Below the pieces are notes generated by a model. That model had not been told where the DNA came from. It ran no database searches and worked only from the letters and a program-made list of their open reading frames with translations. Shown one piece after another: positions 4,787-21,162 of a stretch of DNA of 64,000 bases; position 1 is the stretch's first letter; each line of letters begins with the position of its first letter. A program made the translations under genes and the position numbers. The stretch covers positions 408,750-472,749 of the IMG/VR virus record IMGVR_UViG_3300050821_013430; one strand, written 5' to 3'.

Positions 4787-4787
4787 G

Positions 4788-5204: not shown

Positions 5205-5885
5205 ATGAAGAGTATCGAACGAGAAAAGGCACGGGTTATGCGACAAGAAGGACAGAGTGTTAGGGACATTGCTAAGGCGTTAGGGGTCGCCAGAAGTAGT
5301 GTCTCTGTATGGGTGAGGGATGTTGTACTTACTCAGGCGCAGATAGATGCGCTAACGACGCGCAATCCTATCTACGATAGGCAGCACAAGGGCGCGAAAG
5401 GAAGACAGCGATTAGCCAGGGAAGCACGCATTGAAGCCAGAAAAAACGGACACGAGGTAGCAAAACGAAAGGAATATCTGCACGCATTGGGATGTGGTCT
5501 GTACTGGGGCGAAGGAGCAAAGGATAGGGTAAGCTGTCAATTAGCCAACAGCGACCCATACTTACTGAAAGTATGGCTTCAATTCCTACATCAGTATTTC
5601 CCTGATGTGAAAACGACCCTGATCATCCATTGCTACACTGGCAACGGTCTATCAGTTGAGGAGATAGAGAATTACTGGTCTGACACCCTCGGTATTCCTA
5701 AGGGCGATTTCAGGAAGACAAGAGTGAATCCAATAAGTAGAGCGAGCCTACACAAGAAGCCACAGAACACGCTTCTCTACGGTACAGCACATATCACTGC
5801 TAAGAAAGGGATGCGAATAGTTCAACACATCTTCGGGGCCATTGAGGAATATGGTGGCTTCTCTACTGAGTTTGGGTTGGACTAA
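5205..5885 (+). CDS. HTH + LAGLIDADG-like putative homing endonuclease
   Basis: AAGGAG SD then ATG 5205; HTH (SVRDIAKALGVARSSVSVWV); GLYWGEG and NSDP...YWS motifs; opposite strand to neighbours. Confidence 0.7.
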   Translation: MKSIEREKARVMRQEGQSVRDIAKALGVARSSVSVWVRDVVLTQAQIDALTTRNPIYDRQHKGAKGRQRLAREARIEARKNGHEVAKRKEYLHALGCGLYWGEGAKDRVSCQLANSDPYLLKVWLQFLHQYFPDVKTTLIIHCYTGNGLSVEEIENYWSDTLGIPKGDFRKTRVNPISRASLHKKPQNTLLYGTAHITAKKGMRIVQHIFGAIEEYGGFSTEFGLD

Positions 5886-5891
5886 CTACAC

Positions 5892-5969
5892 TGGCGTCCC
5901 CATCCGGGCTCGAACCGGAACCAACAGATTGAAAGTCTGTCCGCCTAACCAGTTAGCAGATATGGGGAC
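5892..5969 (-). tRNA. tRNA-Glu (TTC) with encoded CCA
   Basis: Acceptor GTCCCCA/TGGGGAC+GCCA; anticodon arm ACAGA-CTTTCAA-TCTGT; T-loop GGTTCGAGCC. Confidence 0.93.
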
Positions 5970-5979
5970 ATACACTACT

Positions 5980-6360
5980 CTACTGCGGCACCAACTTCTT
6001 GATCATGTACTTGACCAAATCCCGATCAAAAGGCCACTCCTGTGTGGGAATCTTGGCAGCAGTCAGCCATGACCGAATGATGGCCGCGCCTTTCCCACCC
6101 CAACTATGGCTCACTGCTTGTGCGGGATAGTAGGATGGATCGAGTTCATTCACGATGAACTTCGCCACATCCTCCCCACTCCCATCTACGCCCAGGTCGT
6201 GATCCAACATCAGCAGACCGATCCGAACCGTCCCGGCTTGCAGAATCTCCTTCCCCTCATCGCAGGAGAAGGCATGCAAGACCACATGCCCCGCCGCGGT
6301 AAAGAGGTCTTCCGCCATGTCGTGCCGTGTCTGGTCATCATCCACGATCAGGATGTTCAT
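5980..6360 (-). CDS. cyclic-phosphate-processing receiver (cREC)-like domain protein
   Basis: ILIVDDD..R, LDHDLG and HSW..G motifs; start ATG 6360. Confidence 0.75.
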   Translation of the reverse strand: MNILIVDDDQTRHDMAEDLFTAAGHVVLHAFSCDEGKEILQAGTVRIGLLMLDHDLGVDGSGEDVAKFIVNELDPSYYPAQAVSHSWGGKGAAIIRSWLTAAKIPTQEWPFDRDLVKYMIKKLVPQ

Positions 6361-6361
6361 C

Positions 6362-6556
6362 TCACACCTCCTTCCCTTCCGGTTCCAGAAAGAACGCGTT
6401 GATGCGGCTCTCCTCCGTTTCCCCATCCCAGACCACATAGACCAACATGCCCCAAGTACGCTTACACACGCCCACCTTGACGTGCCACTCAGACTTGTTC
6501 TGAGCGGCGGAATGTCCCTGCACCCGATCTCCTGCCTTGACTGCGAAGAACGCCAT
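6362..6556 (-). CDS. small SH3/KOW-like protein
   Basis: KAGDRV...VYVVWDG pattern. Confidence 0.55.
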   Translation of the reverse strand: MAFFAVKAGDRVQGHSAAQNKSEWHVKVGVCKRTWGMLVYVVWDGETEESRINAFFLEPEGKEV

Positions 6557-6801
6557 TACCCCACCTCTCCTTTCAAGTCCTTCTCCATGTAGAAGTCCAG
6601 ATACCCATTGTCGAAGAGTACGACATAGGGGTACTTGTCCGCCCGGTACAGCCCCTCCCGATTCTCATTCAGGCGAATCACCTCGCCCGGCCCATGTCCG
6701 TCCGGATAGACTCCGAAGACATGCGCCACCCGATCCCCCACCTTGAACTTCAATTCCGCCGTTTTGGGCACATTGCCTCTCGGCATCTGATATTGACTCA
6801 T
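6556..6801 (-). CDS. small SH3-like protein
   Basis: KFKVGDRVAH...GEV...PYVVLFD. Confidence 0.6.
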   Translation of the reverse strand: MSQYQMPRGNVPKTAELKFKVGDRVAHVFGVYPDGHGPGEVIRLNENREGLYRADKYPYVVLFDNGYLDFYMEKDLKGEVG

Positions 6802-6942
6802 CTCATCCTCCCAGCAGTGCATACACTGCGGTGAAACTGGCTACACAGATGTACATCGCCCGAAGAAGAGTGTCGGTAATGTCAATGTCATCCATTGTCC
6901 TACCTCTTCTTGGGTTGGGGTTCGTCGAAGTGTAATCCTTGC

Positions 6943-7137
6943 TCATGACTTCTCCCTCATCGGAGGCGCACTCCGGTAGATGTATGTAGTTGAGGCCAGG
7001 ATGGCCCGTTCTCGTTCCTTCTGCCACCGGCCCCTCAGTGTCCGGTAATAGGCCCTCCCATCGAGGAACATACTTCGGCCCATGTAAAGCGACAGAACCG
7101 ACCAGATGGCAGCAGCAATGCATGAGATGATGTACAT
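6943..7137 (-). CDS. small membrane protein
   Basis: GGAGG SD; hydrophobic N-terminus. Confidence 0.5.
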   Translation of the reverse strand: MYIISCIAAAIWSVLSLYMGRSMFLDGRAYYRTLRGRWQKERERAILASTTYIYRSAPPMREKS

Positions 7138-7139
7138 GC

Positions 7140-7511
7140 TCACACCACCTCCCATCCCTGAGGATGCGTGGGATGGTAGTTGCAGGGGGTAGGAGCCCCA
7201 CACTTGTCGCAGGTGTGGGATTGGCAGGAAGCACGGAAGAACTCCATCTCTCGCTCCCTATCCGAGGTCTGCCCCTTGGTGGGCTGAGGTGGGAGACTGG
7301 GCACTTTCCGCTCCAAGTGTCGGGGGAGGGAGGGTTGGGTGTCGGGACAGGCCTCGTCGACTTCCACGAAACGGTCTGCGGAGTAGGGCGCATATTCGCC
7401 ACGATTGTCCTCCACTTCCAGCCATCCGGGCGAATAGGTGATAGCCCGATACTCTCTCCCCACCGTTAGCGCCCCTTCCTGCTTGGCGTTATTGACGCAC
7501 TTGACCTTCAT
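7140..7511 (-). CDS. hypothetical protein
   Basis: GAGG SD; MKVKCVNN...LTVGREY; C-terminal CDKC. Confidence 0.6.
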   Translation of the reverse strand: MKVKCVNNAKQEGALTVGREYRAITYSPGWLEVEDNRGEYAPYSADRFVEVDEACPDTQPSLPRHLERKVPSLPPQPTKGQTSDREREMEFFRASCQSHTCDKCGAPTPCNYHPTHPQGWEVV

Positions 7512-7527
7512 TGTCCCACCTCTCCCT

Positions 7528-8118
7528 TCAATCGTCTTTGCAGAAGCCGTTGTTCTCATGGCGCAGGTTGGCATACTGCACCACATCCACGCACATGACA
7601 TGAGGGGCTGCCTTCTGGTATTCAGGGAACATCAATGACACACCCGGTACGAAGGTGTGTTGAAGGCCTAACCCATGTCCCACTTCGTGCTGAGTGATGC
7701 CACTGAAACCTACAGCATCAATCCCATTCGCCTCCTCATCCGCCTCATCCCCAGGGACGAACACCCTCGCCCATTCGTGCCCCATGTGATCTGTCCAGTG
7801 ATAGGTGGTACCCACTGCGTTAGGGTCTCCGGAGAGGCGCCGAATCTCCTCCACGCTCTCACTGGTAATGGAGAAGGCGTTGTCGCAGGACTCATCGCAC
7901 ATCCGCTCCTCAATCACCACATCGAAGGACAGCCCCACATTGGCAGCCTTGGACTCCCACTCATCCAGACTTTCGAGCACCATCTGCATGTGGGGTGGGT
8001 CGAAGTGGGGGCTGATGTAGACGGTGTAGTGCGAAGGAGGATTGGCGCAGGCGGTGCCGAAGACGGATGCGGCGAACATCCCCAGCAAACCACCCACACC
8101 TAATTCCAGGGTTTTCAT
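7528..8118 (-). CDS. matrixin-like zinc metalloprotease, putative lipoprotein
   Basis: HEVGHGLGLQH plus Met-turn (SLMFP); signal peptide ending GTAC. Confidence 0.85.
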   Translation of the reverse strand: MKTLELGVGGLLGMFAASVFGTACANPPSHYTVYISPHFDPPHMQMVLESLDEWESKAANVGLSFDVVIEERMCDESCDNAFSITSESVEEIRRLSGDPNAVGTTYHWTDHMGHEWARVFVPGDEADEEANGIDAVGFSGITQHEVGHGLGLQHTFVPGVSLMFPEYQKAAPHVMCVDVVQYANLRHENNGFCKDD

Positions 8119-8480
8119 CGACCTACCTCCTGGTACAGACCCACACTCAGTCTCCCAAACTCCCCCACCGCGCACATCTGGTGATAAAGGGCGAGGGCGT
8201 CATCCACTGTTGGGCACTTCTCCAAGACACCTTTGGTGCCTGTAAGGAGATCAATGCCTCGAACGCACCACCGACCTTCTGGTAAGTGTCTGTATGCCCA
8301 CTTGCGCGGACAGAGGAACCGTAGGCTCTCCTTCACCTTTCCGTTCAACTCCTCCGATGTCTCACCCTCTACCACTTGGAACAACTGTATCCAACGGTAG
8401 TCGTTGTGGGATTGCAGGGCTTCCACACTCTCGTATGGGAGACTTACCTGCTTGTCCCTGAAAACAGCCACGAATCTCAC
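8115..8480 (-). CDS. hypothetical protein
   Basis: Coupled overlaps at both ends. Confidence 0.55.
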   Translation of the reverse strand: MRFVAVFRDKQVSLPYESVEALQSHNDYRWIQLFQVVEGETSEELNGKVKESLRFLCPRKWAYRHLPEGRWCVRGIDLLTGTKGVLEKCPTVDDALALYHQMCAVGEFGRLSVGLYQEVGR

Positions 8481-8725
8481 GGACTGCTCTTCTGGTCATA
8501 GGCCAGTTGCAGATTGAGCCAGAAGGCGACAGTAGAGCCTAACACCTTACTCAGGCGCTCGGCGATGTCGGGTGTGATGCTTGCTCGCTCATCCAGTAGC
8601 GCAACGATGGTGTAGGGAGGGATACCCGTTTGCCCCGCCAATTCCATTGCGCTCATGGTGAGAGGTTTGAGGTACTCCTCACGGATGACCTCACCAGGAT
8701 GGATTCGTCGCATACCGTTCTTCAT
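8477..8725 (-). CDS. higA: HigA-family antitoxin (XRE HTH), orphan
   Basis: IHPGEVIREEYL...SITPDIAERLSKVLG...FWLNLQ..YD signature. Confidence 0.88.
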   Translation of the reverse strand: MKNGMRRIHPGEVIREEYLKPLTMSAMELAGQTGIPPYTIVALLDERASITPDIAERLSKVLGSTVAFWLNLQLAYDQKSSP

Positions 8726-8928
8726 TGTCCTACCTTCAATTCCTTTTCGATCTCTCCGAAGTCCCTGTCGTACTCTTCCCACGCCAGTACGATACCGTGG
8801 GAGGTGTTAGTCCAGCGCTTACCATTGAAGTCCAGGTAGGTGCCGGTGTTCTGATAATCGACCACCATTCGCGCCAACATCCGCTTGGAACGCAGCATGG
8901 TGGGGATGGGATCACATCCGGTGTACAT
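8722..8928 (-). CDS. hypothetical protein
   Basis: Coupled to higA; no HigB/RelE motif seen. Confidence 0.55.
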   Translation of the reverse strand: MYTGCDPIPTMLRSKRMLARMVVDYQNTGTYLDFNGKRWTNTSHGIVLAWEEYDRDFGEIEKELKVGQ

Positions 8929-9160
8929 GTGCTTACCCCTTCCTTCTCTTTCGGGGGAAATTGGCTCGAATCAGTCGGAGGCATTCCTGCCAGGTGAGAA
9001 CACCTGCGCCACCATCGTCCAAAACGACCCAGATGGGATCACACGCTGGGGGAGTGTTGAAGTATCCCCTGATGTATCCGTAAGTAGCCGTGGTATCGAA
9101 GTCTTGCCGCGGCTTGCTTACGGGTAGGGATGGCGAGCAGGCGAAGTAAGATGACTGCCT

Positions 9161-9370
9161 TCATTTCCCCTCCTCATACCACCTCAGGATGGCTTTGAGG
9201 GTTTCGGGGGAGAGGATGACACTTTGCATTCCCGCACCCTCACCCTGGGTGATCTTGAAGGTGGATTCCCCATCATGTAGGGAAAGGTAGTCGATCCACT
9301 TGACCACCTCGACCTTGGGCGTCTCTTCCGCCCCACCACTGAAACACATCTTGTCGCCGATCTTGCGCAT
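9161..9370 (-). CDS. hypothetical protein
   Basis: GGAGG SD before MRKIGDK. Confidence 0.6.
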   Translation of the reverse strand: MRKIGDKMCFSGGAEETPKVEVVKWIDYLSLHDGESTFKITQGEGAGMQSVILSPETLKAILRWYEEGK

Positions 9371-9375
9371 GTTCC

Positions 9376-9558
9376 TTACCTCCCCTTCTTGGAATACACC
9401 GCCCGCAGCGAGACGATGGCCAGGGCTACGAACAGACAGGTGCTCCAGGCCACTTCGAGGGTATTCAAGTTGAAGGCGGTGTGGGAGAGTGCGGGGAAGA
9501 AGAAGTACAGCATCCAGGTGGTGGCGATGGCAAACCCGATGGCAACGAACGCTTTCAT
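9376..9558 (-). CDS. 60-aa two-TM membrane protein, paralog of 474..653
   Basis: GGAGG SD; MKAFVAIG...AFNLNTLEVAWSTCLFVALAIVSLRAVYSKK. Confidence 0.7.
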   Translation of the reverse strand: MKAFVAIGFAIATTWMLYFFFPALSHTAFNLNTLEVAWSTCLFVALAIVSLRAVYSKKGR

Positions 9559-9650
9559 GACATCCTCCGAGGTTGTGGGTGGTTGAACGCAAGTGAAACC
9601 TGCCAGCGAAGCGCCGCTTGAACAAGCGACAAGGTAAGATGACTGCGACC

Positions 9651-9947
9651 TCAGGCTGTCTTCGCCTCCTTGGCGAGCTCCCGACACACTCTGCACGGCT
9701 CCTTGTGGATGCAGGTGCCGGTCTCCTTCAATTCAGACGATTGGGCGGTGATCTCGTACACCGTCTCCGCCTTGGGGAGCAGACCGTACTCCGAACTCGC
9801 GATGTAGGTCTTGGCAGTCGGGCCGGTGCCCAGGGTGAGAGTGGCGATCCCAGTGTAAGTAGACCAGTCCCCTTCCTTCCGATTGCCTGCCACCCCCGCC
9901 ACGATTCGGAACCGTCCGTGATTGTCGTACTCGATGGTGAATTGCAT
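9651..9947 (-). CDS. hypothetical protein
   Basis: AAGGAG SD. Confidence 0.65.
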   Translation of the reverse strand: MQFTIEYDNHGRFRIVAGVAGNRKEGDWSTYTGIATLTLGTGPTAKTYIASSEYGLLPKAETVYEITAQSSELKETGTCIHKEPCRVCRELAKEAKTA

Positions 9948-9971
9948 GTGAGTATCTCCTTGTGTGGGTGG

Positions 9972-10247
9972 TTAGCGGCCGAGGTAGTCCAGCAGGTTCT
10001 CGTCTCCCCCGCCGAAGTCCTCTTCCCCACCTTGTGCGCTGCCTCGGTTGGCCTTGGGGATGATTGAGAACACGTTCATCGAAACGCGTACCTGTCCGTG
10101 CTCTCCGTCCTTTCCGCACACCCGCTGAGGGCCGCGGCTGCTGTAGATGATCTGGCTCTTGCCGGTCTTGCTCTGTCCCACCTTCTGGCTCAAATCGAGC
10201 CGAATGGTGAGAATGTCTCCGTCCAGGCTCATATCGATCTCTTGCAT
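9972..10247 (-). CDS. conserved small beta-rich protein (possible nucleic-acid binding)
   Basis: AAGGAG SD; LTIRLDLSQKVGQSKTGKSQII resembles a widespread uncharacterised family. Confidence 0.65.
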   Translation of the reverse strand: MQEIDMSLDGDILTIRLDLSQKVGQSKTGKSQIIYSSRGPQRVCGKDGEHGQVRVSMNVFSIIPKANRGSAQGGEEDFGGGDENLLDYLGR

Positions 10248-10291
10248 GACACTTGTTCTCCTTGTCGGTTGTTGTGGGTTGGATGTAGGGG

Positions 10292-10588
10292 TTAGGCGGA
10301 CTTGAGCCACGCTGACATGTCCATGCTCTCCTCTCCCGTCTTGTAGACGGTCGAGGTGTTCTCCGGGTCGACGTTTCCGCCGTTCTGCTCCAATTCGTTC
10401 ACCGTGTCGCCGAGGAGGAGGTTCAGCAGGGCGAAGCCGGAAGCATACTCCAAGACTACACGTCGGGCCTCATGGTAGTTGCCTTCCTCACCTCGGGTCT
10501 CGATCTCCGCCCGAACAGCCTTGCGGCTCAGGGCGCGAATGGGGGCGTTGCCGCAGTTGCTCTCAGCAATCCAATATGCCAGTTGCAT
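10292..10588 (-). CDS. hypothetical protein
   Basis: GGAG SD. Confidence 0.65.
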   Translation of the reverse strand: MQLAYWIAESNCGNAPIRALSRKAVRAEIETRGEEGNYHEARRVVLEYASGFALLNLLLGDTVNELEQNGGNVDPENTSTVYKTGEESMDMSAWLKSA

Positions 10589-10604
10589 GATGATCTCCGT
10601 TGTT

Positions 10605-10845
10605 GAGCCCCCTTGGGGGCGGTTGTCGTTTCGTATCCCAAGTTATCCCAGCAGTCAGCCCACATGAACGCAGAATGTGGCGGGGTATCGACGAGGCCCA
10701 TTCCAGCCCCTCATCCCGTCTGACATTCCCACAATTACCCCCGTTGAAGGTAAAGCGGGGCTTTCATGTAGGCTGACTGCTGAGGGGCTCCCAACCGGAG
10801 CCCGCAGACCGAAACCCCCTAAGGGATACCCTTGGAGGCTTCAAT
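10605..10845 (-). ncRNA. multibranch structured RNA
   Basis: 22-bp stem 10647-10668/10763-10784 whose mismatches are G-U on the minus strand; hairpins 10811-10842 and 10607-10620. Confidence 0.6.
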
Positions 10846-10853
10846 CCGACATC

Positions 10854-11099
10854 TCAGTCCAAGTGCCCACCCGTTCGGGGCGTAGGCACACCGTTGCTAC
10901 CTCCGCCTACTTCCTGCCACGGCATTCCCGCATCATCCCAGGTTGGCGCCCCGCAAGGGATGCCTTGTTGATGCGCCGTGTAGCAGAAGTCAGGATACTG
11001 TTGCCCACCGTCATCCGCGGTGGGGGTGTAGTCTACCGGGCCCGCACCATAGGCGCAGCCGCTCAACATCACGCACGCTGCCATCAGGTATCGAGCCAT
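10854..11099 (-). CDS. small lipoprotein
   Basis: Lipobox LSGC after a hydrophobic stretch. Confidence 0.6.
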   Translation of the reverse strand: MARYLMAACVMLSGCAYGAGPVDYTPTADDGGQQYPDFCYTAHQQGIPCGAPTWDDAGMPWQEVGGGSNGVPTPRTGGHLD

Positions 11100-11104
11100 T
11101 GTTG

Positions 11105-11172
11105 CACCTTTGCTTCCTTTGCCTACAGTGTGGTTTTTGACGCCTTCGCACTCTTCCGCACCTTATCCTACC
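11105..11172 (-). repeat. repeated intergenic element, copy 2
   Basis: See 2383-2450. Confidence 0.75.
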
Positions 11173-11375
11173 TTTGCCTTCTCGAACTCCGCCAGGATCA
11201 CATCCACCGATGCGATGGCTTCCTGCACCAATTCGGTCTCGATGCTGGCTTGCTCGATGTAGTCATCCGCACACATCAGCACCTTTTCCTTTCCCAGCCG
11301 GTGGATGGCAGGTAGATTGACTTCCTCCAAGGTGAGAATGCGACCGCAGAAGAAACAGCCGTAGATGTGGGCCAT
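11163..11375 (-). CDS. hypothetical protein
   Basis: Operon tiling; CFFC. Confidence 0.55.
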   Translation of the reverse strand: MAHIYGCFFCGRILTLEEVNLPAIHRLGKEKVLMCADDYIEQASIETELVQEAIASVDVILAEFEKAKVG

Positions 11376-11377
11376 TG

Positions 11378-11656
11378 TCAGTACCCCATCTCGATTACTT
11401 CGTTCTCGGCCGCAATGTCAGCCTGCCTCCGACAGAAGGCGCAAGTGGGCTCACACATCCCATCGCATCCCACCTCCTCGGCTTCGGCGCTCAGGTCGAG
11501 CACCCCCGGCTCCTCCGCCATCGGCACCAGTTTCAGCACCTTGTCGTACATCGTGTTCAGGGTGCCGTGCAGCTCCTTGTCCCCACACTCCGACATGTGG
11601 GCTCGGATGAGACGACGAAGCAGGCTCAGCTCCATCGCGGTGAATTGAGAGTCCAT
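11378..11656 (-). CDS. hypothetical protein
   Basis: AGGAGG SD before MDSQF. Confidence 0.65.
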   Translation of the reverse strand: MDSQFTAMELSLLRRLIRAHMSECGDKELHGTLNTMYDKVLKLVPMAEEPGVLDLSAEAEEVGCDGMCEPTCAFCRRQADIAAENEVIEMGY

Positions 11657-11690
11657 GTAGTCCTCCTGGGGTGGATGTGGTTGAATGTGC

Positions 11691-11878
11691 GCCAAAGTCT
11701 GCCCCGGGCTCCCTATCTGTCCGCTTCTCTCCGGTGCGTGGGGGTCTATGGGTGGAGAGAGGCTAACAGGAGACCGAGGCAGACTTTGACGGGGGATGTG
11801 GCTAAATACCTACATCCCCCTACATGCGCCAGAAACACTTGTAGCCAGGAGCAGAACCGAAGTCCCACTCCCAGCTAC
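11691..11878 (-). ncRNA. three-hairpin structured RNA
   Basis: 100-nt rod 11691-11790; hairpin 11791-11820; 17-bp G-U-rich stem with C(UUCG)G loop 11841-11878 on the minus strand. Confidence 0.65.
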
Positions 11879-11881
11879 TTG

Positions 11882-12109
11882 TCAGGGGAAGGAGAGCAAA
11901 TGCTCACACTTCCGCCCATTGTCAGACAGACGGAGGAAGATGCGTACCACCTCCCCCGAGATGCCCCACTCCTCTCCCACATCGTAGGCCCAGGTAGAGA
12001 AGACGCAGCTATCGCCGATACGCACCTTGCGCTGAAAGGTAGGATGCCACATCAGGGCCAGGCTGAACTGTACGGCGAGGTACTCCAAGGCACGGAGATG
12101 TAGGGTCAT
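11882..12109 (-). CDS. hypothetical protein
   Basis: Operon tiling. Confidence 0.45.
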   Translation of the reverse strand: MTLHLRALEYLAVQFSLALMWHPTFQRKVRIGDSCVFSTWAYDVGEEWGISGEVVRIFLRLSDNGRKCEHLLSFP

Positions 12110-12110
12110 C

Positions 12111-12335
12111 TCAGTACCCCACCGGCATGAAACCTACACTCTTGCACTTGGGGCACTTGGGTGAGTCCTTGGTGATTCCCAGCCCGCGGTAGAAGGCCAC
12201 ACGATCGGCGGGCATAGGCTTCTTGTGATCCTTGTGCCCACATTCCTCACACCGCCAGAACGGCTTGGGAGGTGTGATCTCACCTACGGGCATGTCGTCG
12301 CCGGACACGAAATCGTCATCGAAGTCGTTCATCAT
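12111..12335 (-). CDS. small Zn-ribbon protein
   Basis: CEEC...CPKC; GGAGG SD. Confidence 0.65.
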   Translation of the reverse strand: MMNDFDDDFVSGDDMPVGEITPPKPFWRCEECGHKDHKKPMPADRVAFYRGLGITKDSPKCPKCKSVGFMPVGY

Positions 12336-12529
12336 CCCACCTCCGTGTAGTGAAAAGCGTACAGGTACGGGGGGCCATCCACCCGCACGTTCGTCCGTCG
12401 ACGCACCCTCTTACCTTTGACCAACTCCTCGTACACGGGGAGCGGCTCCTGGGAGAAGATGCCATCTCGGCGCTGATGTAGGGAAGCAAGCGCCAATGCG
12501 ACTACCTCGGCAGAAAAGACACCCATCAT
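12332..12529 (-). CDS. hypothetical protein
   Basis: GGAGG SD before MMGVFS. Confidence 0.55.
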   Translation of the reverse strand: MMGVFSAEVVALALASLHQRRDGIFSQEPLPVYEELVKGKRVRRRTNVRVDGPPYLYAFHYTEVG

Positions 12530-12542
12530 CCCACCTCCTCGT

Positions 12543-12953
12543 TCAATCCGTTGGACAACCCGACTCGTACCACATGGTACGAGCATCGTCTGCTCTGTCT
12601 TGCGCCACCTGACGTTGGTACTTGAGGTACGCAGCCAGGTGCTCCTTCTGCTCCGGTGTGGTACAAGCGTCCCCATCCACCACCAGAACCACGTTCTTGC
12701 CCCCACACACCTCACAGGGGACGTCGTACATCCCACCTCGTGAGAAGTAGGCTTCCCTTTCCTCACTGCCGGGCTCGAACGCCTCGTCGAACTCCTCTTG
12801 TGAGTAGGCGTGGTTGCCGATGCTCGGTGTCAGGTGAGTGCCGTGTCCATCGCACTTGGAGCACACTTCGTGCTTGTGTGGGAGGAGTGCGACCACCTCG
12901 TCCCCGGTTTCGACGTCGTGGTAGGTGACTTCCCGACTTTGGGGCCGCATCAT
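12543..12953 (-). CDS. protein with DnaJ-type CxxCxGxG Zn motifs
   Basis: CSKCDGHG, CEVCGGK; GGAGG SD. Confidence 0.65.
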   Translation of the reverse strand: MMRPQSREVTYHDVETGDEVVALLPHKHEVCSKCDGHGTHLTPSIGNHAYSQEEFDEAFEPGSEEREAYFSRGGMYDVPCEVCGGKNVVLVVDGDACTTPEQKEHLAAYLKYQRQVAQDRADDARTMWYESGCPTD

Positions 12954-13229
12954 CCCACCTCCTCCTCTTCCTCCTCACACTCGTCTTTGTCCTCTGCCAT
13001 CATGCCCGACATATAGGCGACCGTGCGCCTGTCCTCGCACTCCGCCCACACTTCCGCCATTTCCCGACGTTGATCCCTGGGAGCCTTCATTGTCATACCT
13101 CCTCACAACCTGCCATACCATATGATAGGCTGTGAGGAACTATCCCACATGCTGCCCCAAACGCAGAAAACACGAATCCCCAGAAAGGAGCCTTGTGGCC
13201 CCTTTCCAGGGTGAATGTAGGTGGATGCC

Positions 13230-13430
13230 CTACTTGACTCGTTCCGCCTCACCTTGTGGGATGTCCTGCACCCCGAAGCGCTGCTGTAGGGTCATTGTCC
13301 CCATAGCGCCCAGGTTGTAGTCAAAGGTGACCACGGTGTGGGTTCCTTCCCGCTTGACTACGGTAACCTCCCACACTTGGCCATACTTGACCGAAAGGTG
13401 GGCGCGGATGGTAGGCGAGATGTCGTTCAT
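13230..13430 (-). CDS. hypothetical protein
   Basis: Start at MNDISPT. Confidence 0.5.
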   Translation of the reverse strand: MNDISPTIRAHLSVKYGQVWEVTVVKREGTHTVVTFDYNLGAMGTMTLQQRFGVQDIPQGEAERVK

Positions 13431-13620
13431 TGTCCTACCTACCACGCCACCGCGACCAGACAAGCCACCACGTAGGCCAGTGCCGCACCATAGGCGATGA
13501 TGTTGTTCATTGTGTGTCTTCTCCCTTCGTGTCGGTTGGGAAACTACAACGGCCCCAAACCTCCCGTGTATGGGAAGTTAGGGGCCGGAGGGTAGTTCTC
13601 CTACCTTGTAGGCTGGGAAC

Positions 13621-14136
13621 CTACTTCGCCGCGGGGGGAGTCACCTTGACGCAAAGCGTCTTGGATGCGTCCGCAAGGCGCGTCACGACGAAACCGAGTT
13701 CCTTACAGCGGATCGCGACTTGCTCGATCGCCATTCCGCTCTCGAATGCCTCGGAAAGCGCCGAACACGGCACGTTGTACGACCCGGGGAAACCGCCGAG
13801 CGAGGCACGCAAGCCAGCGGAAAGCCCGTTGTACTCGGCGCGGCGCGTCTCGTACTCTTCCGCATACGGCCCCATGAGATTCGCCAGATCCGCGCGAATC
13901 TGTTTCTCGGCCTCGCGCTTCCGCTCGGTCGCCATGAACGAAAGCGACTTGATCACGCGATCGTTGACGGTACGGATCGTGTCGGGAGTCAGCACCTTGT
14001 CGCCGAGAGCCTTGCCGTTGGGCCAGGCATTGGCGAAGATTGCGTGCAAGGTCGACAGTGCCTCGGTCGCCGCGCTCTCTTCCGTCTCGGAAAGGACCAG
14101 AACCTTGTTACTCGTGTCGCTGGGAATCATGGCCAT
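13621..14136 (-). CDS. first gene of the leftward early array, unknown function
   Basis: AGGAG SD before ATG 14136; very GC-rich codons. Confidence 0.75.
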   Translation of the reverse strand: MAMIPSDTSNKVLVLSETEESAATEALSTLHAIFANAWPNGKALGDKVLTPDTIRTVNDRVIKSLSFMATERKREAEKQIRADLANLMGPYAEEYETRRAEYNGLSAGLRASLGGFPGSYNVPCSALSEAFESGMAIEQVAIRCKELGFVVTRLADASKTLCVKVTPPAAK

Positions 14137-14149
14137 GATGACGTATCTC

Positions 14150-14707
14150 CTGTTATGTCCCATGTGGGACGGTTGGGTTACTACTGAACGCTACTGCTAC
14201 GTAGCGGTTAGAACCTAAGGCGCCGCGAAGCACCGCGCAACGTGGCATACTACTTGCCTTAGATGCTAACCGCTACGGGAAACGATGTAGGGGGAACCTA
14301 TACAGTGTGGCTCGACTCCTTACATCGTTTCCGTATCCTGGTAGGATGCTATCTCTACCTGATAGTCCAGTGTCGTTTTCTCCCTATGTTTTCGGGGGGT
14401 TAGGAAGGACGGGACACGTAACGAGTATCCGACCTAACACTAGACAGGATGACCTGGCCCTACTCTAGCCTACCTTGTGGCAGACCACGCACCCACTATG
14501 TGGGACATCTTCCGCCTCCGCTTTCATCGCCCCACCTTGCACCCCTTACGGGGTATGCATGTAAGACGCTAGGACGTTTGGCGCCGATGTAGGACTATTA
14601 GGTTGTCAGGGAGCAGAGGTCATCCAACATCCTACCTTGTCCCACGTTGCGACCACGGATGTAGCGCGCGGTGCGGGAGGGTAGGTTGCGGGAGAGGACC
14701 ACGATAC
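14150..14707 (-). ncRNA. large (~560 nt) structured leader / ncRNA
   Basis: 12-bp stems 14200-14211/14266-14277 and 14278-14289/14321-14332; long-range stem 14447-14455/14617-14625; GUAA tetraloop hairpin 14541-14554. Confidence 0.6.
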
Positions 14708-14717
14708 AGACATAGAT

Positions 14718-14734
14718 AGCACGTGCTATGCCAA
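14718..14734 (-). promoter_or_regulatory. sigma54-type promoter (predicted TSS ~14707)
   Basis: TTGGCATAGCACGTGCT = GG-N10-GC; overlaps palindrome ATAGCACGTGCTAT; directly upstream of the structured leader. Confidence 0.55.
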
Positions 14735-14820
14735 GAGAGGGTAGAGGCTAACTATGCGGAATCATTGGAGAGGCACCTGATGTAGGGCAAGGTGGGATGG
14801 GGGCGGGAGCCCAGGGTACG

Positions 14821-14852
14821 ATGTAGGTATTGGGCTAAGTAGGCGGAATCAT
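14821..14852 (+). repeat. 32-bp exact direct repeat, copy 2
   Basis: Identical to 3062-3093; partial variant ggctaactatgcggaatcatt at 14746-14766. Confidence 0.95.
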
Positions 14853-14929
14853 TGGGGATAGGGTTGGGGTATGGGGCCCCCAGGGTGGGGGAGCCTACCC
14901 TCACCCCCAGGGTAGGGGTCTTGCCTACC

Positions 14930-15300
14930 TGGTACAGTTGTTGTATGGGATAGAAGCATGCCAAGCCTAGAGGGTAGGGGGAGGTAGGACAGGGCGGGGA
15001 TGGCCGGTATCTTGCACCGGATAAACTCATGCCAAGGGTGCCGTGTAGTACAAGGTGGGAGATGTAGGGCAAGGTCGGGCGGTGCAAAACCCATGCCAAG
15101 TGGTAGGATAAGGTGGTTTGGGGCCGGTTGGCATTGAAACTGCAAGGGAAAGGAACATGCCAAGGGCTTTTGGTAGGAAGTTGTAGGAGATGGTAGGTTT
15201 CTCGAGGAATGGCATAGGTATTGCAGGGGAAAGAAGGATACCAGCAGAAAGGTGGGATATTGTAGTTGGTATGGGGATTGCAAGGACAAGAAGCATGCCA
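14930..15300. repeat. array of five 34-bp dyad elements made of inverted sigma54-like boxes
   Basis: Units at 14930, 15001, 15129, 15210 and 15267, each TGG-N10-G(C/T)-N4-NN-N10-CCA; half unit ending 15098. Confidence 0.8.
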
Positions 15301-15691
15301 TAGGGGGCTGGAGCCCCCGTTTCCTGGGAGGTAGGCCAGGGTGGGGCGGTGTGGGCCTCCCAAACAGGGGTAAAACACTCTTCCGCCCGCCTTCAACACT
15401 AATCCCTCCCATTCAATCAAACCCTGCTCGACACTAATCTGACTATCCTATCCGCCCCACCAATCCTACCATTCCTAAACACCCCTCAATCTATTCCACC
15501 TTACCTTACTGCCCGAAACTACTCCTCCTATAAGGCCCTAGGAAGCGTCGCACCTTAGAACGTAGGGGGATGTCAATCTCAGTCGAAAGCGTCCTATAAC
15601 TAAGCCTAGCCCCACTAATAGGCCATCTACCCACCACCGCCACTTCAAATCAGACCCCCTCAACCCTCAAAACCTGGATAATTCGCCGAAC

Positions 15692-15733
15692 TGCAAAATT
15701 GACGCCGGAAACCGAATGCAAGAATCGTGCCAA
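15692..15733 (-). promoter_or_regulatory. tandem sigma54-type boxes
   Basis: TTGGCACGATTCTTGCA (15717-15733, consensus match) and CGGCGTCAATTTTGCA (15692-15707). Confidence 0.65.
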
Positions 15734-15751
15734 AATGTAAGCGTCAAATGA

Positions 15752-16000
15752 ATGGAATTAGATACTTCAACTCTTGGAGGTGCCATTCTTTGCGGTAAGG
15801 ACAGCCCGACATCGGTATTGGCTGCTGCCGCGGGACTCCTGAACAAGAGGAAGACGACAGATGGGACAGCCTTTGGATTGAAAATCGTGCCAGGAGATCA
15901 TGAGCGAGAGGATCCGCGTAAAATGGAGAGTGGGGCGAGAGCCCTAAACCTTATTAGGAGGAATAAGACGCTCGGAAAGGATCGTAATATCATCATCTGA
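15752..16000 (+). CDS. hypothetical protein
   Basis: ORF only. Confidence 0.4.
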   Translation: MELDTSTLGGAILCGKDSPTSVLAAAAGLLNKRKTTDGTAFGLKIVPGDHEREDPRKMESGARALNLIRRNKTLGKDRNIII

Positions 16001-16174
16001 AAACTCCTCATCACCCACAAACCAACTATATTCTCTCTCACGACCAACATAAACACCGTTCTCCCACCTATTACCTTCAATATAGGTATAAGAAGCGATG
16101 CGGGGCTCATATTTCTTATCCTTATCTTGAATCCAATAGTATCCTAATTCTCTAAGTGGCGTCTTGCTTCCCAT
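15944..16174 (-). CDS. hypothetical protein
   Basis: AAGGA SD before MGSKTPLRELGYYWIQ. Confidence 0.5.
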   Translation of the reverse strand: MGSKTPLRELGYYWIQDKDKKYEPRIASYTYIEGNRWENGVYVGREREYSWFVGDEEFSDDDITILSERLIPPNKV

Positions 16175-16249
16175 ATGGTGTCCTTTGTTATTGACATGGT
16201 AAATCCAAGAGAATAAGAAGTCAAGAGGATAAAATGACATTGGGAAGAG

Positions 16250-17155
16250 ATGCTGAAAACTGGAATCATTACCGCCCCACCCGCTATGGTGAGAGACATC
16301 AGCGACTTCGTGGTAGGAGCTTATGCTACACGGATCCTGGAAAACTTTGAGGAGAAGAGATTCCCACGGAACAAAGAAAGTATGGCGATACGAACCGTGC
16401 TGGAAGCGTTGGCCGAACGAAGCGGCAAGAAAATGATCATCCACCAGATAGACTTCGCCTACTACTTTGCGAAATTGAATTTTGATGATTGGGATGGGCC
16501 GGTGGGACCTGGGGAGAAGATAAAAGAAGTGCTAGGAGAGCACGGAGTAGTAGGAGTAAAGTGCTATGAAGTCTTCTACCCTACAATGGACAAACATCCA
16601 CGACCGGGAGCTAATGCTCAATGGAGCTATAACTTCCAAATCACCACCTATGCAGAATTGCCAATGGCTCAGAATCTGCAAGACTTTCGTCAATTGACCT
16701 TGGATTTGCAAGGGAAACAGAATGAGCTGAAGGTAACGGTGGCCCATGAACTCATTCATATGGTCCAGTATATCATTCAGATAATGCGAGGATTGAAAGA
16801 GATAGGAGGACTACCTGCTGAGAAAGTCAGGCATTCGGCCCCTCCCTTGGTTGATCCGAGCATCCCTTATCACTTACGGGATGAAGAGTTTTACACCAGT
16901 TTGGCGGATACCATTGAAACCTTTATGGAGCATGTTCGGAATGTGCCGGTGGAATACCGGGAAATAGCACTGCGGAGCTTTTTGAACCTACCATTCGCGG
17001 CGAGCAGAGATGCTCGGAAGAATTTGGTTGTTAGCACTTTCTTCGAGAAGATGCATAAGGATGATCCGAAAAGATGGGCGGAGTATGCCAAGAAGTTTGT
17101 GAAGCATTTGAGTCAGCATCCGGAAATCATGGGAATGGAAAGCGCTGCGGAATAA
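16250..17155 (+). CDS. HExxH metallopeptidase-like protein
   Basis: TVAHELIHMVQ with downstream EEF. Confidence 0.65.
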   Translation: MLKTGIITAPPAMVRDISDFVVGAYATRILENFEEKRFPRNKESMAIRTVLEALAERSGKKMIIHQIDFAYYFAKLNFDDWDGPVGPGEKIKEVLGEHGVVGVKCYEVFYPTMDKHPRPGANAQWSYNFQITTYAELPMAQNLQDFRQLTLDLQGKQNELKVTVAHELIHMVQYIIQIMRGLKEIGGLPAEKVRHSAPPLVDPSIPYHLRDEEFYTSLADTIETFMEHVRNVPVEYREIALRSFLNLPFAASRDARKNLVVSTFFEKMHKDDPKRWAEYAKKFVKHLSQHPEIMGMESAAE

Positions 17156-17238
17156 AGCATTACGCGCTGCATAAAAAGGCATCTCTTGTTTGAGGTCCTT
17201 AGAAACATCCCTCAAAATCTTCCAAAAAGGCTGCACAT

Positions 17239-17961
17239 ATGAATTTGTTGAAGGCTCTGTTGATTGCTTGTTTGTCGATTTTCAGTTTCGGTTGTGGTAC
17301 CAGTATGCACGTCAGTGGGCAAGTTAGTGTGCCAAACTTGATGAGTAAGACGGTAGTACTAACTACTTATGTGATGAATGAAGATGATGGTACCGCCTCA
17401 GTAAAACCATATTGCAGCGGAGTCTTTATTTCGGAACGGGAGATTTTGACAGCAAGACATTGCGCGGCAGCGATAGCAGAAAAGGATAACGTGGAAGAGT
17501 TGGATAAGCTTCCAATGCACTACACCTTAGCCTCCGAAGCGGTAGGCGTTGGCAAGGAGCCTGCTGCGATGCATTTGGCCTTCGTGGTCAAAGAAGATAA
17601 GGACAAAGATTTGGCACTACTGCTATTGCCGAAACAAGGGATTCCGGCTCATGGAATTGCGCGAATCGCGGACGAGATGCCCGCACTGGGCGAAGCGGTG
17701 GAAGTTATTGGAACGCCCACGGGAAATTATTTTACTTTGAGCCACGGCTATGTTGCGGCAGTCAGAGAAGACTATCATGATCGAAAAGGTACCTTTTTGC
17801 AAGTGAGTGGTAATGGCATCTACTTCGGCAACAGTGGCGGACCTGCTTACAATGAAAAAGGTGAGCTGGTCGGGATTGCAGACTTTTTGAGTATGAGATT
17901 GCCCGGCAGCGTTTTCTTTGTGGCAGTACCGGAACTGAAAGAGTTTATCGAAGAAGTCTAA
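17239..17961 (+). CDS. trypsin-like serine protease, putative lipoprotein
   Basis: LTARHC, DLALL and GNSGGP triad motifs; lipobox SFGC. Confidence 0.9.
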   Translation: MNLLKALLIACLSIFSFGCGTSMHVSGQVSVPNLMSKTVVLTTYVMNEDDGTASVKPYCSGVFISEREILTARHCAAAIAEKDNVEELDKLPMHYTLASEAVGVGKEPAAMHLAFVVKEDKDKDLALLLLPKQGIPAHGIARIADEMPALGEAVEVIGTPTGNYFTLSHGYVAAVREDYHDRKGTFLQVSGNGIYFGNSGGPAYNEKGELVGIADFLSMRLPGSVFFVAVPELKEFIEEV

Positions 17962-17977
17962 CGACTGCTTGTAAGCC

Positions 17978-18589
17978 ATGAAATTTTGGTTGTTGATAGA
18001 CTTGTGCTTAGCCCTTCTTTGTGTGGGGTGCTATCATAACTTCTACCAATACACCCGAGTTGCCCCAACAGAGATAAGTTGGCGGATTATTTCGGTCTAT
18101 GTCGATCGTGGTTTTACGGAACAAGAAAAGATAGAAGTCGTCAATGCTATCATGCAGTGGAATTATGTTCTCAATAACTACATCCAATTACGAATAGAAT
18201 CCTTTGATGCAACCTTCGATGAGGATAGTGTTGCGGGAATACAAGAGAAGCGGGGATACATGTTCCGGAAAATTTCTGAGTCGGAAGCCTGCGCCTTGAA
18301 AGAATGCTCCGATGAAACCTTAGCCTTTGTTAATGGAATAGGAAGCAGAGGCGATACCGTTTATGTCATTGGCGGAAGAGAACGGGAAGAAAAACTAAGA
18401 GGCGTAGTAATGCATGAAATCGGGCACCTGATGGGCGTCAGACATATTGAAGGTACCTTGATGGACGAAAACTACGACCCCATTACCTTTCAATGCGTGG
18501 ATCGAATTACCGAAAGGTGGGCAGCGTATCGACAAGGACTGGACCCCAATAAATTGAACTATTGTATCATTGGAGATGATCCGAACTAA
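17978..18589 (+). CDS. matrixin-like zinc metalloprotease, putative lipoprotein
   Basis: HEIGHLMGVRH plus TLMD Met-turn; lipobox CVGC. Confidence 0.85.
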   Translation: MKFWLLIDLCLALLCVGCYHNFYQYTRVAPTEISWRIISVYVDRGFTEQEKIEVVNAIMQWNYVLNNYIQLRIESFDATFDEDSVAGIQEKRGYMFRKISESEACALKECSDETLAFVNGIGSRGDTVYVIGGREREEKLRGVVMHEIGHLMGVRHIEGTLMDENYDPITFQCVDRITERWAAYRQGLDPNKLNYCIIGDDPN

Positions 18590-19233
18590 GTAGAACTGGA
18601 ATCCGAATCATCGTAATAGGTGTCATAGATTTCTCTGGTTAGACCCATATCTAAAACTACCGGATGTTTTCCATTAGTTCCATAACTGGAAATCCGTGCC
18701 AAATCCCCCGGCAAAACCCTAAATGTCTTGCTGAGTCTTACAAGGTCTTGATAGAGTTCAGTCTTAGCAATTCGCTCAAAATTGTTGGGTTTCTCGTGCT
18801 CGCCATTGGAAAGGTCTCTCAAACCATATCGAAGAGCGTCTCCGAACTGCTTGAAATCAATGCCGGTCATTTGCTCAAAATCCTTCTCATTGATCTTCTC
18901 TAAAAAAGGAGCCACCCGCCAGTAGCCCTGCTTGTCAGCAAAAATGGTAGGATTGATATATTTGGATTTCATTCCAGGATCGGATTCCACCTTATTTTGG
19001 GCTAGGCCTTTTTTGTTCTTGGCCAGTTTTAGCACTTGACCGTCGGGAAGTTTATAGATGATACGGGCTGATCCAGAAGAGAGGTGCTCCGTATGCTTCT
19101 CAGCATATTCAATACGATCCTTGAAATGCTCTAACTGAGACAGTTGAGAAAGAATGGTTTTGGTATCTTCGACACTAACCTTGACCAATTGTTGGTAAAA
19201 AGTGGCTAACCGGGCAAGGGAGTTATAGTTCAT
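18586..19233 (-). CDS. protein-kinase-like fold protein
   Basis: SSGSARIIY, VLKLA...QN..E, GDL...SYG, VLDMGL. Confidence 0.6.
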   Translation of the reverse strand: MNYNSLARLATFYQQLVKVSVEDTKTILSQLSQLEHFKDRIEYAEKHTEHLSSGSARIIYKLPDGQVLKLAKNKKGLAQNKVESDPGMKSKYINPTIFADKQGYWRVAPFLEKINEKDFEQMTGIDFKQFGDALRYGLRDLSNGEHEKPNNFERIAKTELYQDLVRLSKTFRVLPGDLARISSYGTNGKHPVVLDMGLTREIYDTYYDDSDSSST

Positions 19234-19245
19234 GATCTTTTGGAC

Positions 19246-20490
19246 AAGAAAGTTATTCTGCTGCTAGCATTGTTACGACAGAAATTTGATATCCATTTGA
19301 TATATCGAATTATTGCCCTTGATCTAGGCATGATCCATCATTCTCATATATGCAGCGAACAGTTTCCGTCCCAGTCAATGTCCCAACAGGCTTTCTTGAT
19401 TACTTGAAGACCTGCTCGGTCATCTTCAATAGGCATATCGATTGGGCCTTCGAGAACTATACCTACAACAAGATCAAGGCCCACCAAGCCCTCTACTACC
19501 CTATTCGGGCAGAGTTCCCAGAGATACCTTCCTCGGTCTTGCAGGCTATCCGAGATACTGCTGTGGAGGCTGTAAAAGCCATCGACTTCAAGTTCAAGCC
19601 CACCAAGAAGCCCCATTCAGCAGTTAGATACAATGCTCGAACCATATCTCTTCGTGGCAATTTGCTCTCGTTCTCTTGGTCGGGCGATAGGATCAAGCAG
19701 TTAATCAAACTGCCTACTTTCTTCACCAATCGCTATAAGGACTGGAAGTTCCAATCAGCCACCATCGGCTATGACAAGCGGAAAGCCCAAGTCAGAGCCA
19801 ACCTTACTTTTACTTACCCCACTCCTCCTATCGTTCAGACTGACAACTCTGATCGAATAGTTGGGGCAGATCGAGGCTTGCACAACATCATCTCGCTGTC
19901 GGATGGTACTCTGTTCAATGCCTCTCGTGTTCGAGCCCAGAAACGCAAGTTCCTGTATGTAAAACGACAGCTCCAAGCAAAAGGCACTCGATCATCAAAG
20001 CGTCTCCTCAAAAAGAGATCAGGTCGAGAAATGCGGTTCAGCTCGGATGTCAATCATTGTCTATCCAAGAAGTTGGTCAATCTTCCGTATGATGTGTTCG
20101 TCCTCGAAAACCTTGCGGGTATCCGTAAACGAAACAAGGGTCGAAAACTCAACGGCTGGCTGTCTAACTGGACATTCTTTCAGTTAGAGCAGTTCATCGG
20201 GTACAAGACAGAAGCACTTGGCAAGCAAGTAGTCAAGGTGGATGCCCGCTATACCAGTCAGAAATGCTCAGACTGTGGGAATACAGACAAAGCAAGTAGG
20301 AAGGGCTCTCGATACTTATGCGTTGAATGTGGGCATGCGGAGCATGCCGATATCAACGCCGCTAAGAATATCAAGGCCAACTACACTCTCTCCTTGGCTG
20401 CAAAGAACAAGGAGCAGGCTCTCGTCAATGAGCCAAATGCCTCGGTCGCAAGATCAGAGGCAAGTTATTAGTTTTCTGATAACGCTTGAC
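19246..20490 (+). mobile_element. IS200/IS605-family (IS1341-like, tnpB only) element; left end approximate
   Basis: tnpB followed by hairpin GTTATTAG-TTTT-CTGATAAC and TTGAC at 20490; no tnpA in window. Confidence 0.6.
19350..20471 (+). CDS. tnpB: RNA-guided endonuclease TnpB
   Basis: RuvC-I GADRG, RuvC-II VLENL, Zn finger CSDC/CVEC, RuvC-III HADINAAKNI. Confidence 0.95.
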   Translation: MQRTVSVPVNVPTGFLDYLKTCSVIFNRHIDWAFENYTYNKIKAHQALYYPIRAEFPEIPSSVLQAIRDTAVEAVKAIDFKFKPTKKPHSAVRYNARTISLRGNLLSFSWSGDRIKQLIKLPTFFTNRYKDWKFQSATIGYDKRKAQVRANLTFTYPTPPIVQTDNSDRIVGADRGLHNIISLSDGTLFNASRVRAQKRKFLYVKRQLQAKGTRSSKRLLKKRSGREMRFSSDVNHCLSKKLVNLPYDVFVLENLAGIRKRNKGRKLNGWLSNWTFFQLEQFIGYKTEALGKQVVKVDARYTSQKCSDCGNTDKASRKGSRYLCVECGHAEHADINAAKNIKANYTLSLAAKNKEQALVNEPNASVARSEASY

Positions 20491-20517
20491 ACACCAAAAT
20501 GCGGAATAAGGCAGGGG

Positions 20518-21162
20518 TTAGGCGAAGAGAGAGCAAGTATCAAAATCATCCAATTGATTAGGAAGTTGTTCGACATCTAAGAGTCGTTGAAATCGAAGAG
20601 GACAATCCAATGGATCATAACTGAAATTACGACTCCGTATTCCTCTTTGCATTTTACGAGGAGTGATCTCGATAACCGACTCTTTTCGCGATACAAAATT
20701 GATAGCCCTATACTCTTTCTTTTCTTTCACCAGAATGGCATTCTCATAGAAAACTGGTATCTCAGAGTATTGGGCTTTTTTCAGATCGAGATCAAAAGAT
20801 TTGGAACTATAACGATATGCGACGCAACTACCGCAGGTACGATGAAAATTGATGGCATTGATGGCTTGACTTTTCTTACGAAAGGATTGAAACTTCTCTA
20901 AATCAACGCTACTTTGCGACTCGGAGAAATAAGGAGACAAGTAAAAGTCATTCGAGGTCAAATCGTAATGTACTTCTATTTGGAAATCAGTTCGACGAGA
21001 ACTCATCGGATAACCGGTAATAGAAAATGTTCCAATGGCACGCTCGGCCTCAAGAGCCACTAGTTGAGGTGTCCAAGTATTGAGAGTCAATTCTAACACC
21101 AATGTCCCACTACAAAGGGGACAGTTAGTTCGATAATCGAGAAAGTTTTGTAGAGTAGTCAT
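20518..21162 (-). CDS. hypothetical protein
   Basis: 214-aa ORF; CPLC...CGSC. Confidence 0.65.
   Translation of the reverse strand: MTTLQNFLDYRTNCPLCSGTLVLELTLNTWTPQLVALEAERAIGTFSITGYPMSSRRTDFQIEVHYDLTSNDFYLSPYFSESQSSVDLEKFQSFRKKSQAINAINFHRTCGSCVAYRYSSKSFDLDLKKAQYSEIPVFYENAILVKEKKEYRAINFVSRKESVIEITPRKMQRGIRSRNFSYDPLDCPLRFQRLLDVEQLPNQLDDFDTCSLFA

Follow-up and report, generated by a model that had tools for sequence, protein, structure and literature searches.

Conserved arrays of head-to-head sigma-54-like promoter boxes in a gene-free region of a huge soil phage

A gene-free region of about 1.6 kb in a huge soil phage is packed with sequences that look exactly like sigma-54 (RpoN) promoters, and five of these are arranged in 34-bp head-to-head units. 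The region is conserved in relatives. The same head-to-head design is present in about 30 other viral contigs and in none of 185,579 bacterial and archaeal species genomes. The most likely reading, at a probability of about 0.5, is a cluster of sites for the host sigma-54 RNA polymerase that would act as promoters, six facing rightward and three facing leftward. In this reading the 34-bp units derive from a phage-specific bidirectional dyad.

Results

Genomic context of the control region

The window analysed here is a 64,000-nt stretch that forms the end of IMGVR_UViG_3300050821_013430, a 472,749-bp viral contig. It carries phage-type genes, including several pectate-lyase-like tailspike proteins, a collagen-repeat protein, a PIN-PhoH protein, thymidylate synthase, dUTPase and a GMP-reductase-like gene. 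Comparison with GenBank phages gives no DNA match and no match to the protease. A stand-alone cREC_REC receiver-like protein lies next to a tRNA-Glu gene, and an AAA_33 kinase-like gene lies nearby (window 5892-6438 and 2478-2960). Together these may hint at RNA-repair functions. A TnpB-like gene (Cas12f1-like TNB and OrfB_IS605 domains; window 19350-20471) sits where the relative L004 has a NUMOD3-domain gene instead (L004 11977-12747), which looks like a mobile-gene polymorphism at one site.

The control region separates a leftward module of small genes from a rightward protease and nucleotide-metabolism module. The rightward operon starts at 16250, or possibly with an ORF at 15752, and begins with a 301-aa HExxH protein, a trypsin-like protease and a matrixin-like peptidase (16250-18589). 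The leftward operon starts at 14136. The leftward module (window 1-15000) has 55-59% GC against about 45% for the rest (16000-64000). The same contrast is seen in L004 (56-58% at 1-7500 against 40-43% at 9648-20553). In the group of the distant relative L008, the contig L011, which mostly covers the left side, has 53% GC against 40% for L010, which covers the right.

The control region is not supported as coding sequence. Two long minus-strand ORFs cross the array, but they translate to low-complexity, proline-rich junk and indels against L004 break the frame. Stop-codon recoding is unlikely because the neighbouring genes read normally in the standard code. Mini-ORFs starting at the ATG of CATGCCA are 2-14 codons long and are not conserved, and this reading was set aside.

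Sequence boxes in the window

The initial annotation described five dyad units of exactly 34 bp built from head-to-head sigma-54-like boxes, and this observation is confirmed. All five units are present at the positions described (Table 1). The left halves have GG-N10-GC in four units and GT in U1. On the minus strand the right halves read TGG(C/T)AT with TC or GT at the -12 position, also as described. Of the solo boxes that had been listed, four are real and conserved in L004, whereas those at 14910(+) and 15692(-) are weak and not conserved. The statement that no gene follows the boxes is wrong, because operons follow in both directions.

Table 1. Features of the control region, in window coordinates (PWM, position matrix; L003 and L004, close relatives described below)
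Position	Strand	Feature	Evidence
14164..15750		ORF-free intergenic control region between the leftward module (first gene 13621-14136, minus strand) and the rightward module (16250 onward)	Long minus-strand ORFs low-complexity; indels against L004 not multiples of three; alignable with L004 7563-9130 in conserved blocks; no sigma-70-like promoter or intrinsic terminator found
14243..14258	+	Solo sigma-54-like box TGGCAT-N5-TTGCC	Conserved at L004 7657 with changes only outside TGG and TGC; PWM score 15.5
14718..14733	-	Solo sigma-54-like box TGGCAT-N5-GTGCT, pointing to the leftward operon	Conserved in L004 (TGG at 8156, minus strand) although 4 of 5 spacer bases differ
14746..14858	+	Two copies of a 26-nt direct repeat (GGCTAA.TA.GCGGAATCATTG), 87 nt apart, upstream of U1 and U2; candidate activator or regulator sites	Both copies conserved in L004 with 88-nt spacing
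14930..14963	+	Unit U1 (34 bp); left box has GT instead of GC	L004 orthologue at 8354 is 34 bp and has GC
15001..15034	+	Unit U2 (34 bp)	Left half identical in L004 (8425); in L003 the right half is converted to a near-identical, U3-like form and the unit is still 34 bp
15083..15098	-	Solo sigma-54-like box TGGCATG-N4-TTGCA, pointing leftward	PWM score 22.8, second best in the window; in a block (about 15061-15089) identical in L004; the box itself (L004 TGG at 8511, minus strand) keeps TGG and TGC while two spacer bases differ
15129..15162	+	Unit U3 (34 bp), the only perfect outer dyad	Absent from L004, so probably a recent duplication
15175..15390	+	Most conserved block of the region, spanning U4, U5 and about 90 nt downstream	About 90% identical to L004; no RNA covariation; folding z-score -0.09
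15210..15243	+	Unit U4 (34 bp), left box at full consensus	PWM score 19.8; left half identical in L004 (8614), where the unit is 35 bp
15267..15300	+	Unit U5 (34 bp)	L004 orthologue at 8672 keeps TGG, TGC and 34 bp while 5 other bases of the left box change
15370..15700	+	C-rich, G-poor stretch (GC skew down to -0.83) following the G-rich array (skew +0.3 to +0.64)	Same composition visible in L004
15717..15732	-	Solo sigma-54-like box TGGCACG-N4-TTGCA, best match in the window, pointing leftward	PWM score 24.0; conserved in L004 (TGG at 9107, minus strand) and in L003, each with one spacer change

The boxes are far more frequent than expected from local composition, a comparison that the initial annotation had proposed as a test. 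The pattern TGGYA-N24-TRCCA occurs four times in the 64-kb window, all in the array, and five of the eight CATGCCA words are located here. In 1000 dinucleotide-preserving shuffles of 14164-15750, no shuffle reached the observed totals for any of six related patterns. These include TGG-N9-TGC (8 observed, 0.9 expected), TGGYA-N7-TGC (7 observed, 0.1 expected), the dyad (4 per strand observed, 0.01 expected) and CATGCCA (5 observed, 0.2 expected). A position matrix finds eight boxes scoring 14.9 or more, all between 14243 and 15732, and none in the other 62 kb. The density is therefore not a by-product of the G-rich composition.

Additional repeats are present in and around the control region. 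A 32-nt exact repeat occurs at 14821-14852 and 3062-3093. The distant copy lies inside a small minus-strand ORF that was read by eye at about 2975-3199 and is absent from the computed ORF list, so a plus-strand transcript of the control region would be perfectly antisense to that mRNA. The word GATGTAGG occurs 12 times in the window, and 11 of these fall within 5585-15061 (9.5 kb). About two occurrences would be expected by chance in 64 kb. A palindrome around the 14243 box is not conserved in L004. The C-rich stretch of about 330 nt after the array has as few as 4 G per 100 nt and resembles a Rho-loading site for untranslated rightward RNA.

Conservation in close relatives

The flanking proteins have almost no homologues. 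A 58%-identical homologue (P0002) was also found, and its contig does not enter the comparisons below. The strict unit pattern finds only the source contig in IMG/VR and nothing in the genome_contigs collection, and a metagenome scan returned only a contig (L006) that is identical to the window. A second relative, L003, is 98% identical. The informative relative is L004, from a 286-kb ENA contig, whose genes are 73-81% identical in DNA and whose gene to the left of the control region is only 40% identical in protein. The best-conserved noncoding block is more similar to L004 than is the coding DNA around it.

Three of the four units in L004 keep the 34-bp length and one is 35 bp, so the fixed length is nearly conserved. 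Across eight orthologous boxes, TGG and TGC are kept in 47 of 48 cells, while the 5-nt spacers are kept in 27 of 40 (Fisher p = 1.7e-4). Core bases are thus conserved while spacers vary, as in sigma-54-dependent promoters. The four conserved solo boxes indicate that the recognition unit is the 16-bp bipartite box, as for a monomeric sigma-54. Outside the array, a 76-nt block (window 15864-15939; L004 9489-9564) is 91% conserved inside an otherwise variable stretch and holds AATCGTGCCA, the same word as in the 15717-15732 box.

The units are not supported as an RNA hairpin or a small RNA. Arm variants break pairing in the window and in L004, and the spacers are not complementary in any dyad. 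No intrinsic terminator was found, and there is no covariation in the conserved block just after U5. A search with Rfam 15 covariance models finds only a tRNA-Glu elsewhere in the window, and the two hits within the region have E above 1.

Dyads in distant phages

The trypsin-like protease has homologues about 40% identical on other huge-phage contigs. In the roughly 10 kb to the left of their protease operons, two of these contigs, L008 and L012, carry 11 and 6 dyads, respectively (at most four mismatches in the four pentamers). The dyads have the form TGGCAY-N5-TTGCA-N3-TGCAA-N5-RTGCCA, which is two complete -24/-12 boxes placed head-to-head in 35 bp. A third contig, L029, has six more next to the same protease trio. 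In all three contigs, dyads sit between the leftward module and the protease operon. No dyad lies to the right of the operon in L008 or L012. In L008, the dyads are in intergenic gaps of the leftward small-gene module, 44 to 490 nt upstream of the next leftward gene. Three lie between that module and the protease operon (L008 9383-11416), which is the position of the array in the window. The peptidase operon next to the control region is conserved in these phages, but it comprises C39, trypsin-like and roughly 200-aa proteins in the relatives. The related huge phages also encode a ribosomal protein L12 homologue (L009 and L011, about 6735-7127) and a class-1 peptide release factor (L008-L010; L008 19353-20447).

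The units in the window are a one-sided derivative of this element. The centre is 2 nt, and the right inner block is GGAAA in place of TGCAA. Among the dyads in the fetched loci, the centre is 3 nt in 47, 2 nt in 10 and 4 nt in 5, and a length of 34 bp is thus a normal variant. The N5 spacers are not complementary and one-sided changes are common, so the element is read as DNA sequence and not as a hairpin.

The exact 35-bp dyad is present in 30 IMG/VR contigs with 33 to 59% GC. Four of these are 210-481 kb and many are 5-50 kb. It is absent from one genome of each of 185,579 prokaryote species (596 Gb in all). The same four blocks placed back-to-back, with equal information content, give no viral hit. 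The dyad loci share no gene family. In L014-type contigs the dyad lies upstream of the small and large terminase genes. Gaps with dyads are divergent in 13 of 42 cases, against 54 of 361 (p = 0.014), a modest enrichment that rests on crude ORF maps. Cultured relatives of one dyad-bearing lineage, the Cobavirinae, lack the dyad (P12053L in full, and the genome-end regions of ICBM1 and CRP-5).

Similarity to RpoN promoters

Four of the five unit left halves and four solo boxes have GG and GC exactly 10 bp apart within the sigma-54 pattern TGGCAC-N5-TTGCW. In 135 distinct exact boxes from other phages, the positions that were not used for selection follow the RpoN consensus YTGGCACGr. T precedes TGG in 48%, C or T is at position 6 in 97%, G or A is at position 7 in 93%, and a purine is at position 8 in 75%. 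A matrix built only from boxes of phages outside the window ranks the Escherichia coli pspA sigma-54 promoter first in its 5-kb locus (14.6 against 8.7). It also ranks the window's boxes at the top, with one outlier at 1909-1924 (+; score 16.9). This outlier is the only good sigma-54-like box outside the control region, has no partner, and lies in a short gap between two minus-strand ORFs.

Co-oriented genes lie downstream of the boxes in both directions, but the leaders would be long, at 459-957 nt rightward and 571 nt or more leftward. The rightward and leftward boxes are interleaved, so transcripts would overlap. No GAFTGA, Walker A or RpoN-box signature of an activator (bEBP) or of RpoN was found in the window, which is 64 kb of the 473-kb genome, or in any dyad locus. 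A scan with the E. coli RpoN peptide, which only finds close relatives, found nothing. Relatives of the bEBP AAA+ domain are encoded on 75 IMG/VR contigs (L045-L119), and many of the matches cover only residues 32-169 of the 325-residue PspF query, at sites inside 10-59 kb contigs. None of these is on a dyad contig and none has a sigma-54-like box within 3 kb. The conserved repeats upstream of U1 and U2 could be enhancer sites. Dyad regions of unrelated phages also hold their own short repeat families, for example GTACTTAAGT and GGATCACTCAGG in L014 (2650-3300) and a palindromic CCACAAGCCGTTGTGG in L018 (600-900), and these may be sites for phage-specific regulators.

Discussion

The interpretation of the initial annotation is partly supported. 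The reading as head-to-head sigma-54 (-24/-12)-like boxes is well supported, whereas its proposals of a sponge or loading platform and of phage iterons are not favoured, though none of these is excluded in the absence of binding data. In the reading preferred here, the array is a cluster of sites for the host's sigma-54 RNA polymerase that would act as enhancer-dependent promoters in the main divergent control region of the phage. Six boxes (14243 and U1-U5) face the protease and nucleotide-metabolism operon, and three (14733, 15098 and 15732) face the small-gene module. The 34-bp units would be a lineage-specific, asymmetric derivative of two full boxes placed head-to-head with a 2-4 bp centre. 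In E. coli glnAp2, transcription starts 12 nt after the C of the GC, and with this geometry the full element would start transcripts in both directions 18 bp apart. In this lineage the right-hand -12 element would have become GGAAA, leaving a rightward promoter plus a retained inverted -24 element, but the right arm of the units is better conserved than a vestige should be. The analysis itself establishes the motif, its statistics, its conservation pattern, its match to the RpoN consensus and its phage-only distribution. That sigma-54 holoenzyme binds and reads the boxes, that the host carries rpoN, that transcription starts there, and that an unidentified activator, possibly binding the nearby phage-specific repeats, switches it on are inferences. 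The absence of a sigma-70-like promoter from the region is consistent with this reading, and Pseudomonas phage YuA offers a precedent. Arguing against it are the lack of an activator or RpoN signature in the window or in any dyad locus, the absence of a link between the motif and the bEBP-like genes on viral contigs, the long leaders, the interleaved opposing boxes, and the lack of the motif in cultured relatives of one dyad-bearing lineage.

An alternative, which is less likely, is that the units and dyads are operators for a symmetric, dimeric or tetrameric DNA-binding protein, encoded by the phage or a so far unrecognised host factor, that regulates the flanking operons. Such a protein would read four T(G/T)GCA pentamers spaced 11, 8 and 11 bp apart, and the resemblance to sigma-54 promoters would be coincidental or mimicry. 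The strict dyad symmetry and constrained centre (3 nt in 47 of 62), even where a gene lies on one side only, fit a symmetric dimeric binder more simply. The lack of back-to-back hits, the dense arrays in L018 (42-51 bp between dyad starts), the lack of a detected bEBP and the absence of the dyad from prokaryote genomes also favour this alternative. However, an identical motif in phages of 33-59% GC and unrelated gene content is unexpected for phage-specific regulators, and a factor shared by many hosts explains this distribution better. The outer (TGGCA) and inner (TTGCA) pentamers are consistently different, the flanking preferences match RpoN, and conserved solo half-elements exist.

It is also possible, but unlikely, that the sites would bind sigma-54 or its holoenzyme without productive transcription, either as a decoy that lowers host sigma-54-dependent responses or as closed-complex roadblocks that insulate transcription units. 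This is the sponge proposed in the initial annotation, and it has no specific support. Sigma-54 holoenzyme forms stable silent closed complexes, and many non-productive sigma-54 sites exist in E. coli (PMC4591121). Nine or more good sites lie in 1.5 kb with no activator gene detected in the window, and the second half of each unit keeps the -24 element but lacks the GC. However, overlapping head-to-head sites cannot both be occupied by holoenzyme, so a dyad adds no capacity. In L008, the dyads are where promoters are needed, in gaps between small leftward operons, including 44 and 59 nt upstream of two genes.

The least favoured reading is a replication origin or packaging site, with the repeats as iterons or recognition sites for an initiator or terminase. 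Transcription from the boxes might then activate the origin through the G-rich strand. The cumulative GC skew minimum lies near 14000 with divergent gene orientation, the G-rich plus strand switches sharply to C-rich at about 15360, and short repeats (GATGTAGG, GGTAGG) are numerous. The dyad position upstream of terminase genes in L014-type contigs and the iteron-like repeats next to dyads in L014 and L018 are also consistent with this reading. However, unit spacing is irregular (71, 128, 81 and 57 nt), there is no AT-rich unwinding element (lowest 100-nt GC is 0.44), and no initiator, helicase loader or terminase gene was recognised next to the region. In relatives the dyads are scattered over many intergenic gaps, and the same motif occurs in unrelated phages.

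A broader and more tentative possibility is that diverse phages carry a promoter architecture that cells do not use, in which two sigma-54 promoters are fused head-to-head into a 34-36 bp palindrome. It would serve as a compact bidirectional, enhancer-dependent switch, or as an orientation-blind trap for sigma-54 RNA polymerase. It would control whole gene modules and be driven by an activator of a kind not yet recognised, and the window would show a lineage in which the element became one-sided and was multiplied into an array. Sigma-54 transcription is regarded as a cellular stress and nitrogen circuit, and phage use of it is barely documented. A phage-only, head-to-head sigma-54 element would mean that many uncultured phages, including 200-480 kb ones, take over the enhancer-dependent polymerase, and it would raise the question of what activates it. 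The element gives a simple sequence marker for regulatory regions in genomes where almost no gene has a known function, and it could also supply a compact bidirectional inducible promoter for laboratory use.

Sigma-54 promoters such as E. coli pspA and glnAp2 share TGGCA(C/T)-N5-TTGC(A/T), the 10-bp separation of GG and GC, and the extended preferences. The phage boxes differ in that they are paired head-to-head with a 2-4 bp centre, occur in arrays and are found only in viral contigs, with no activator gene or recognised enhancer found and with binding inferred from sequence alone. Phage YuA relies partly on host sigma-54 for transcription (Ceyssens 2008, as cited in 10.1101/2023.10.13.562163), but it has a single conventional promoter, and no dyads or arrays are reported there. 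Iterons and operator arrays of plasmids and phages are also repeated protein-binding sites in gene-free regions, but they have regular helical spacing, an adjacent initiator or repressor gene and an element-specific sequence, none of which is seen here. The tandem early promoters of phages (T7 A1-A3) are likewise several strong host-polymerase promoters packed ahead of an operon, but they are of the sigma-70 type, point one way and need no activator. In symmetric bidirectional sigma-70 promoters, sequence symmetry reportedly gives divergent starts about 18 bp apart (Warman et al. 2021), and the geometry of the 35-bp dyad predicts 18 bp. Those promoters reportedly rest on overlapping -10 hexamers and are common in bacteria, whereas the sigma-54 dyad is absent from the prokaryote genomes searched. 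The intragenic or non-productive sigma-54 sites of E. coli (PMC4591121) are also good sites with no obvious gene to serve, but they are single and scattered, whereas those described here are clustered, paired and conserved in intergenic DNA.
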